A stretch of DNA of 63,489 nt from Salpingoeca rosetta. Taxonomy: Eukaryota; Protista; Choanoflagellata. Positions within the stretch are counted from its first letter, which is position 1. Each line of letters begins with the position of its first letter. Shown one piece after another: positions 3,133 to 16,420 of this stretch. Location: positions 2,712,255 to 2,775,743 of the forward strand of contig JAWQFM010000001.1 in the NCBI GenBank assembly GCA_033442325.1, written 5' to 3'. Under the pieces are notes generated by a model that saw only the letters and a list, made by a program, of their open reading frames with translations, did not search any database and had not been told where the DNA came from. Both the position numbers and the translations under genes were made by a program.

Positions 3133-13499
<10,367 letters not shown>

Positions 13500-13818
13500 C
13501 ACCGCAGCCCTGTTCCGTTTCATCTCTCCTTCGCACGCTCTCCTCTCTCCTTTGTAGTTCGTCAAGGCGCGATTATTTGCCGTGTTACCCGTAAACATTC
13601 CGTTTCCACAACAAACAGTGAAGAAGCATTTGTTTGGCGCCGCAGCATTTCCAAACCAAACACCAAACCAAACCAACCAACGTGCTTCACCTGGCTGTGC
13701 ATCTCTCCTTGACACGCGAGTGAGGCGGAGCGAGTTGAGCACTTGTGCTGTGTCTGTGGTGCATTTGCGGAACAACGAACCACGATTGGGCTGGCATTGG
13801 CGGTCGTACTCAGTTACA

Positions 13819-13981
13819 ATGGAGCAAGAACGGTTGGAAAGCATCAGCAACTTCAAGAGCGCCTTGGAAAACATCATCGCCAAGGTGTGTGCGTGTGTGC
13901 GTGTGTGCGTGTGTGTGTGCGTGTGTGTGCGTGTGCGTTTGTATGTGTGTGTGTGTGTGCGTGTGCGTTTGTGTGTGTGTC

Positions 13982-14014
<33 letters not shown>

Positions 14015-15543
14015 GTCTGTCTGTGTCTCTCTGTGTCTCTGTGCTCGTGGTAGTGACGACGGCGGTGGTGGCGCTGAGTTCCCATTGTGTCTTGTCAGCG
14101 ATGGATGGCTGTGCATGTGTATCTGTTCCACCCGACCATGTCCACTCAATGTATTGTGCTTGTGTTGTGCTGTCTGCTTGCTGTGTGCAGTACTCGCACG
14201 CTTTTGAGAACACGGATGTGATTGATCTGGAGACCAACACCATCGTCGAGAACTATGGCCTGATCGAGAGCTTAGGGAACCCCAATTCCTCACGCCGGTG
14301 CACAACGACGCGCGTGAAGCCGCGACGCAAGTTCACCAAGCCGCGCAACTCTGGCCCCACGTCATCGCCGCCATCATCGACCGAGCAGAAGACAAAGCGA
14401 GACATGCCGTTTTGCTTTGACACAGCGTTTGACAGCGACGATAGCAGCGACAGCGCGAGCGGCGATGAGGGCGAGCCTGCACCTGCCAACACACACAAGC
14501 CCCATTCGCGAGGCAGCCCGCCCACACGTGCGCATGCGCGTGCCAGCCGGCAACACCGCGCCTATGCCTACGAGAGCGGCGAGGAGAGCGGCGAGGAGAG
14601 CGGCGAGGAGAGTGGCGCAGACAAGAACGATAAGCCCATCGGTGGTTATGAAGCCGGCGATGGCAACACCAACGATGATGGCGATGTGAGCGGGGCAGAG
14701 GACAGTGAAGGAGCGCCGGCTTTGTTGCACATGCGCGCATGCGATGCAAGTGCAGCTGGGCGGCGCTGCGTGTCTCGCGGCCGGCAGCATGGACGCGGCG
14801 ATGACGAGCACGTCACCAGCGGATACGTGAGTGGGGAGGACGAGGACGCGACACGCGAGCTGCACCAGTCGCTGTCACCGGCATACGGTGGAACGGGCGC
14901 ACTGGCGCTGGCGGTGCTTGGACGCGACGAGCACGGCGCAGCCATGGCAGCATCAGCAGCGGGTGTGGCGCAGGTGAACAGGATCCTGCGTGCGCGAATG
15001 ACACACAGGGAAGGCAAGAAGCGCCGTGGCAGTGACGACGAGGAAGATGAGCAGGAGGAGGATATCAACAGCGATGTTGATGGTGATGACAGGAACGGGG
15101 CGGATGGCAACATCGACATCGCTGCTGATGACCAGCATGAAGATGAAGTGCAGACAGACGACCTCATCACTGCACCCGCCGCCACCACCGCTGCTCCAAC
15201 GAGCACCCGCCCTCACCATCGCAGTCGCAGCAGCAAGACCAGCAGGAGCACTAAGAGCAGCAGGAACAGCAAGACTCGTCGAGCGAACAACGCCAAGCGA
15301 CGTGTGACCCCACGCCCAATTGATGACGGTGACGAAAGCACTGCTGACAGCAATGGTGGTGGTGGCGTTGGTGTTGGGGCAGAGGGGTTTGACAGCGTTT
15401 CAGCAACACCAACAAAGCGTCAGCCAAGAGGCCGACGCCCAAGACGCAGCAGGCTGCAGCGCAGTGGCGGTGGCGACGGCAGTGACCGGAATATACACAG
15501 GAAGGTCGCACGCTCCCTGTTCTCAGAGGGAATGGGAAGGTGT

Positions 15544-15574
<31 letters not shown>

Positions 15575-15870
15575 ATGCTGCTGCTGTTGATGATCATCGT
15601 GATGACAATGATGATGACACCGGTGTTGATGGACGGAGTGCCGGTGAGATTGAGGGCTGCAAGCGTGCCAAGCTCACGTCACCAGCCCACGGTGAAGATG
15701 GTGAAGATGGCGATGATGGCGATGATGATTGCGTGATGGATGACGAGAGCGTGGGGGATAGTGTGCAACAGCAACACAACAGCGCACGAACAGCGAAGCA
15801 GCGCCACGACCCCTCCACGTGCACTCTTCTCTTCTGTTTTGACTGCGCCAGCACCAGCACCGACGACTGA
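13819..15870 (+). CDS. SCM3: Scm3/HJURP-like CENP-A chaperone (exons 13819-13884 and 14191-15870, ~581 aa)
   Basis: Removing GT-AG intron 13885-14190 gives MEQERLESISNFKSALENIIAK|YSHAFENTDVIDLETNTIVENYGLIESL, which fits the Scm3 domain pattern (F.s..e.I.eKY...f...D.IDL.T..Iv...G.l.sl). A long acidic/basic disordered body and a C-terminal HDPSTCTLLFCFDC follow. Confidence 0.75.
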
Positions 15871-15928
<58 letters not shown>

Positions 15929-16420
15929 CGCGCGTGCAGTGGCTAATTGTTGTGTTGCTTAGCTGTTCTTTGTCTTCTTGCACCCGAGTTCTCTTCCTCG
16001 TACCTTTGCACGCGCGCGGTGCTTATGTAGTGTAATTGCTCCTGCTTTTCGCCTGTGTTGGGGGATGCTGGCACTGGCTGTGTTTATGATCCCATGCATA
16101 CATGAAATGATGATGCAACACGAAACAAAACAAGCAGTCAAACAAGCAAACACAACACGACACGAGCGCGGATGTATGCGACACAGCCGTGAAGCGCAGC
16201 CACAAAGAACACAATCAGAGACTCCGCACGCACAACACAATCGACTACACGTCAAACGCCTGCACACACACACGCACACACGCACGCGCGCGCACACACA
16301 CACACACATATGCACACGTGCACAAACCTCAGGGCACCAACGATAACAACACAAAAGGGAAAGAGCGAATGGAGAACGGGTTTGGGGTGGGGTTGGGCTG
16401 GTGTGCTGTCACGCAACTGC

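Follow-up and report, generated by a model that had tools for sequence, protein, structure and literature searches.

In the accessible parts of PMC13322267, proteins of the Scm3/HJURP family appear in no other role than that of CENP-A assembly factors, and the loss of CENP-A accompanies the absence of HJURP. According to the same parts of this source, these proteins are of very variable length and have little in common outside the scm3 domain, whose defining features are a KY dipeptide and a stretch of acidic and short hydrophobic residues; a DXGXL motif is reported there for fungal and choanoflagellate scm3 proteins, and choanoflagellate scm3 domains are presented as logo plots. Scm3 was also recorded in fungi and choanoflagellates in the available text of the 2014 CAL1 paper (PMC3912524), and both sources, in the parts accessible to us, credit Sanchez-Pulido et al. 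(2009) with a choanoflagellate protein that links fungal Scm3 and animal HJURP. Publications have treated the choanoflagellate Scm3 as such a link since 2009, with a renewed discussion in 2026. Searches for literature combining Scm3 with either Salpingoeca rosetta or Monosiga brevicollis found nothing; the supplements of the 2026 paper, for those in text form, list no choanoflagellate species, and the text of a 2024 paper on holozoan mitosis has no mention of Scm3/HJURP.

We analysed a stretch of 63,489 nucleotides of DNA, called here the window, to which all positions refer unless another contig is named. An initial annotation, made from the letters alone, had assigned it to a unicellular holozoan, rightly so as the DNA is that of S. 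rosetta. The H2B and H2A proteins encoded in the genome have identical counterparts among the entries of S. rosetta ATCC 50818 (XP_004991141.1 and XP_004998143.1). We are confident that positions 13819-15870 of the plus strand hold a two-exon Scm3/HJURP gene, coding for a putative CENP-A chaperone of 581 aa with a complete N-terminal scm3 domain. This is an expected gene of a known kind that had already been modelled publicly, and it leaves the state of knowledge unchanged; what it brings is that a public gene model of S. rosetta, with no Pfam family recorded in the collection queried, can now be labelled by function as Scm3/HJURP, CENP-A chaperone. Such a label should be useful for centromere work in S. 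rosetta, a model among the closest living relatives of animals.

A two-exon gene in an uninterrupted reading frame

The mechanical ORF found at this locus (13582-15870, 762 aa) crosses the intron without interruption because the length of the latter is a multiple of three and no in-frame stop is present; the ORF track does, indeed, mask the gene by reading through 13885-14190, as the initial annotation had pointed out. The open reading of the gene itself starts with the ATG at 13819-13821, which is the sole ATG between 13582 and 13821, all frames being checked. Exon 1 is translated as MEQERLESISNFKSALENIIAK, and exon 2 opens with YSHAFENTDVIDLETNTIVENYGLIESL and is closed by the TGA at 15868-15870. 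The intron that separates them begins with GTGTGTGCG and ends with TGTGTGCAG (CAG at 14190), and about 48% of its dinucleotides are GT or TG. The coordinates of all features are collected in Table 1.

Table 1. Features of the Scm3/HJURP locus (positions of the window) and the two divergent H3-like genes found elsewhere in the genome (contig and positions).
Feature	Position	Strand	Description and evidence
Probable 5' untranslated region	13594..13818	+	Low, non-zero RNA depth in the sense of a plus-strand transcript (first mate on the minus strand), three runs
Exon 1	13819..13884	+	22 codons; carries the N-terminal helix of the scm3 domain; last residue is the K of KY
Intron	13885..14190	+	GT..AG; 306 nt (102 codons); mostly (GT)n/(CT)n; no in-frame stop
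Exon 2	14191..15870	+	559 codons and TGA; low-complexity, with predicted disorder, past the first ~29 residues; open frame, RNA depth, composition
Second half of the scm3 domain	14191..14277	+	Y of KY, acidic/short-hydrophobic stretch ENTDVIDLETNTIVEN, G-x-hydrophobic motif NYGLI; Pfam Scm3 profile 23-52 of 53
First FCFD motif	14410..14421	+	Exon 2 residues 74-77; context MPFCFDTAFDSDD
Only long helix predicted outside the scm3 domain	14935..15012	+	Exon 2 residues 249-274; AlphaFold2, pLDDT about 45-50, weak
Second FCFD motif	15832..15843	+	Exon 2 residues 548-551, 12 residues from the C-terminus; context LLFCFDCASTSTDD
Probable 3' untranslated region	15871..16018	+	Converges on the opposite-strand KDEL-receptor gene; RNA depth in the sense of a plus-strand transcript, to about 16018-16115
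Divergent H3-like gene (L005/L011)	G000:C3:1934330-1934881	-	Loop 1 three residues longer than that of H3
Divergent H3-like gene (L010/L012)	G000:C24:845430-846203	+	

The gene had been presented as hidden, a description that applies to the six-frame ORF track only. Indeed, assembly GCA_000188695.1 (GL832955.1) calls a gene over a 2052-base span that is identical base for base to 13819-15870, with a product of 581 aa. This length is the sum of the two exons (22 + 559), and the 2052 bases minus a CDS of 1746 nt (581 aa and the stop) leave 306; the splice model proposed from the sequence is, therefore, identical to the public one. For this 581-aa product, no Pfam family is on record, which would fit an uninformative name such as “hypothetical protein”. 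The 683-aa read-through ORF has no identical entry in a protein collection, which is no surprise given that the intron is removed in the public model. Querying by word search with either exon 2 or its initial 70 residues returned no matches either, not even the 581-aa product of the gene itself; as other proteins of S. rosetta do occur in the same collection, these blanks are uninformative and say nothing on relatives. It should be remembered that, for queries of low complexity, a blank word search is not to be taken as absence.

The gene is preceded on the same strand by a P4-ATPase flippase and faces a converging KDEL receptor on the opposite strand; farther downstream lie a small MORN protein, a glutathione synthetase, and PDS5, the glutathione synthetase being 100% identical to an S. 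rosetta protein.

Raw reads from three stranded RNA runs of 2026 (X21-X23) were mapped on positions 13400-16300 (2901 letters), and depth was recorded in 97-nt bins. In the three runs, read orientation matches a transcript of the plus strand. In every run, the three bins that span 13885-14175 have a depth of exactly 0, against 1.6-17x in the bins on either side. From 14176 to 15921, every bin has non-zero depth in all runs (three bins of X22 are thin, at 0.12-0.3x), and there is, therefore, no sign of a second intron big enough to leave a 97-nt bin empty. Reads spanning 13884/14191 were looked for in the three runs and none is listed, because the repeat at 13883-14071 is masked and reads seem to be cut there. 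The splicing of 13885-14190, as claimed in the initial annotation, is, thus, backed by the depth and by the public model but not by a junction read; the intron call rests on depth, GT..AG ends, profile continuity (see below), and the public model. One could still argue that the intron is retained or otherwise spliced, the functional product then being deprived of an intact scm3 domain, all the more so as the missing junction read is compatible with this reading and as a retained form, free of stops, would still be translatable. We hold this to be extremely unlikely: intron depth is zero in all three runs despite coverage of the exons on both sides, exactly 306 nt are taken out in the public model, and 13884|14191 is the only junction yielding GT..AG ends together with continuity of the profile.

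The reads also differ from the assembly at several places. Within 15621-15760, which belongs to the acidic C-terminal tract, there are nine sites where the assembly is contradicted by all or nearly all of the RNA reads from the three runs, and eight of the nine differences are non-synonymous; a DNA-run contig from another locus, carrying the same 31-base repeat unit, also aligned there. The nine differences could be due to strain divergence, to an assembly error, or to misplaced reads from a similar repeat. Upstream of the gene, the highly expressed segment 13400-13593 is probably the 3' end of the flippase; fixed differences between RNA reads and assembly are seen at 13472, 13517, 13525, and 13569, and at 13529-13532 additional letters are present in the reads of each of the three runs, with loose ends on both sides whose consensus sequences overlap, which suggests an insertion that the assembly lacks. 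Downstream, poly(T) loose ends on reads of the opposite sense mark, at 16066-16069, the poly(A) site of the converging minus-strand KDEL-receptor gene, and a 3-nt insertion (ACA) with respect to the assembly is found at 16164 in about 90% of the RNA reads and in a DNA-run contig.

The match to the Scm3 family

The Pfam Scm3 family (PF10384) has a profile of 53 positions and a curated cut-off of 24.3 bits. We scored the product piecewise (read-through ORF, exon 2, first 70 residues of exon 2, and exon 1) against 24736 families, with reporting at E<=10, and Scm3 is the sole family reported for each of the pieces. The read-through ORF, taken from its ATG, scores 30.3 bits (E 3.3e-7, profile positions 22-52) and the first 70 residues of exon 2 score 26.7 bits (E 4.5e-6, positions 23-52); the whole of exon 2 (559 aa) stands just below the cut-off, at 23.0 bits (E 6.6e-5, positions 23-52), and exon 1 alone, with its 22 residues, reaches 13.3 bits (E 0.071 against all Pfam) over positions 2-22. 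Two of these pieces, thus, exceed the cut-off of Pfam Scm3, and the predicted membership of the Scm3/HJURP family is supported. A six-frame search of the 55.4-Mb assembly found a single Scm3 match, at 28.1 bits, and it is this gene.

Exon 1 (2-22) and exon 2 (23-52) abut at the junction and cover together, without any gap, 51 of the 53 profile positions, a coverage that depends on the splice, itself based on RNA depth and on the public model. The KY dipeptide is formed by the junction, K being encoded by 13882-13884 at the end of exon 1 and Y by 14191-14193 at the start of exon 2; the scm3 domain, about residues 1-52 of the 581-aa product, is, thus, split by the intron between K22 and Y23. KYSHAF is followed by ENTDVIDLETNTIVEN, which fits, as judged by eye against the accessible parts of PMC13322267, the alternation of acidic and short hydrophobic residues described for scm3. 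The site of the DXGXL motif aligns with N-Y-G-L-I, in which the G and the hydrophobic position are retained and D is replaced by N.

Would a long low-complexity frame produce such a match by the chance occurrence of short motifs, with no true homology to Scm3? The match extends over only about 30 + 21 residues, the remainder being of low complexity, and the full exon 2 falls under the cut-off. We nonetheless regard a chance match as very improbable: two separately scored pieces point to one and the same family among 24736, the second starting on the profile where the first stops; the curated cut-off is exceeded in three scorings; the KY dipeptide comes first, then the acidic/hydrophobic stretch, then the G-x-hydrophobic motif, with none of them missing or out of order; and the gene is expressed, as seen in the RNA runs. 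The resemblance to Scm3 is beyond chance at the level of the sequence, because Scm3 is the only family found for each piece and because the profile ranges abut at the junction.

A phmmer search against the PDB paired DVIDLETNTIVENYGLIESL, which comes after KY, with DLVDLKTGEIVEDNGHIKTL of S. cerevisiae Scm3 (2L5A chain) at an E value of 1.2, which is not significant when taken alone; human HJURP was not retrieved by this search.

The tail of the protein and a repeated FCFD motif

From about residue 30 onwards, exon 2 abounds in D, S, G, R, and A, and acidic and basic tracts alternate along it. An AlphaFold2 model of exon 2, computed in single-sequence mode, is of low confidence throughout (mean pLDDT 39.9), and the tail is predicted to be disordered. 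Neither HJURP_mid nor HJURP_C, nor any other Pfam family beyond Scm3, matched the scored pieces at E<=10. Such a low-complexity tail, disordered according to the prediction, agrees with the picture drawn in the accessible parts of PMC13322267, where little is shared outside the scm3 domain.

The tetrapeptide FCFD occurs twice in this tail, the first copy sitting about 20 residues past the scm3 domain. An equally rare repeated 4-mer was obtained in only 7 of 20000 composition-preserving shuffles. The first copy is encoded by TTC TGT TTT GAC and the second by TTT TGC TTT GAC, and the pair is not a recent duplication of DNA, because the codons differ. FCFD may be a short linear motif. Going one step further, FCFD and the small and acidic residues that follow it might constitute a new, choanoflagellate-type docking site bringing the chaperone to centromeres, for instance onto the Mis18/M18BP1 complex or onto CENP-C; this is a speculative proposal, which we consider unlikely to be correct. 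Were it true, the pair would be a counterpart to the two C-terminal repeats of human HJURP, with no sequence in common. In our opinion, follow-up work at this locus would be worthwhile for the FCFD pair only.

Candidate partners, proposed function, and comparison with Scm3 and HJURP

As a chaperone for a centromeric histone needs to be discussed together with its possible partners, we report here those found by six-frame searches of the same genome. The H3 genes comprise canonical H3 and H3.3-like genes as well as two divergent, intron-containing H3-like genes (Table 1); the two divergent genes show CENP-A-like features in alpha2/alpha3. The product of the gene at G000:C3:1934330-1934881(-) aligns ungapped to yeast Cse4 and has a W in place of F84 of H3. 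PDB searches with pieces of the two divergent genes gave scores that fail to separate CENP-A from H3, loop-1 length being the only informative character. The genome, thus, holds two candidate genes for CenH3, the centromeric H3 variant. It also encodes a SANTA-domain protein (M18BP1/KNL2 family, 50.9 bits) and contains two matches to the Yippee/Mis18 family; the six-frame search for the CENP-C cupin domain gave no match, which is no evidence of absence in so intron-rich a genome.

Gene structure, expression, and family match were observed at the locus itself. For its part, the loading of CENP-A is a role that we infer from family membership, and the binding of CENP-A/H4, its specificity, the targeting to centromeres, and the role of the tail are proposed by analogy with the described members. 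On the model of its homologues, yeast Scm3 and human HJURP, the scm3 domain would bind CENP-A/CenH3 and H4 in the form of a pre-nucleosomal dimer, which would be clamped by the N-terminal helix and by the acidic/hydrophobic strand that comes next. This clamp would keep the CenH3/H4 dimer from forming tetramers or binding DNA until its delivery to centromeric chromatin, and the chaperone would then deposit CenH3/H4 at centromeres. The putatively disordered acidic/basic tail would provide targeting as well as regulation and cell-cycle control, perhaps through a licensing pathway of the Mis18/M18BP1 type, which is suggested because a SANTA-domain protein is encoded in the genome.

A different role can be envisaged, in which the Scm3-domain protein would serve non-CENP-A histones (for example, a second divergent H3 variant or H3.3) or have another function in chromatin instead of being a centromeric loader. 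In line with it, the genome has two divergent H3-like genes, either of which may be CenH3, the tail has no recognisable targeting domain, and the loader role derives from the family. This alternative appears improbable to us, as the gene is the sole Scm3 match in the genome and as the family is known, from the accessible parts of PMC13322267, for CENP-A assembly only, with CENP-A being lost where HJURP is absent. The reading of the gene as an Scm3/HJURP-type CENP-A chaperone has its weak points: a conserved part of about 52 residues, a whole-exon 2 score of 23.0 bits, an E value of 1.2 for 2L5A, the replacement of D by N in the DXGXL motif, and the CENP-C cupin search without a match. We, nevertheless, keep it as the preferred reading when setting the S. 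rosetta protein against the known systems.

In vertebrates, the continuation of the HJURP helix reads KYNQPFEDT, and the KYSHAFENT of S. rosetta presumably resembles this segment of the human protein. The initial annotation had seen the gene as bridging the Scm3 and HJURP families; a likeness to the fungal protein can be made out in the 2L5A pairing, though it is weak, and the bridge is not a new idea, having been published in 2009.

Compared with fungal Scm3 (S. cerevisiae/K. lactis; 2L5A, 2YFV), the S. rosetta protein has the Pfam Scm3 domain in common, but it differs in carrying this domain at its extreme N-terminus, in its length of 581 aa, in its long tail of predicted disorder, and in having N for the D of DXGXL. 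With vertebrate HJURP (3R45), it shares an N-terminal scm3 domain with KY, followed by a long remainder that is poorly conserved, as described in the accessible parts of PMC13322267; vertebrate HJURP, however, has HJURP_mid and HJURP_C after the scm3 domain, whereas the S. rosetta protein matches neither of them at E<=10. The closest of the known systems is the choanoflagellate Scm3/HJURP protein of 2009, as reported in the available parts of PMC13322267 and PMC3912524: it comes from the same lineage, has the same scm3 domain, and occupies the same intermediate place between the fungal and the animal proteins.
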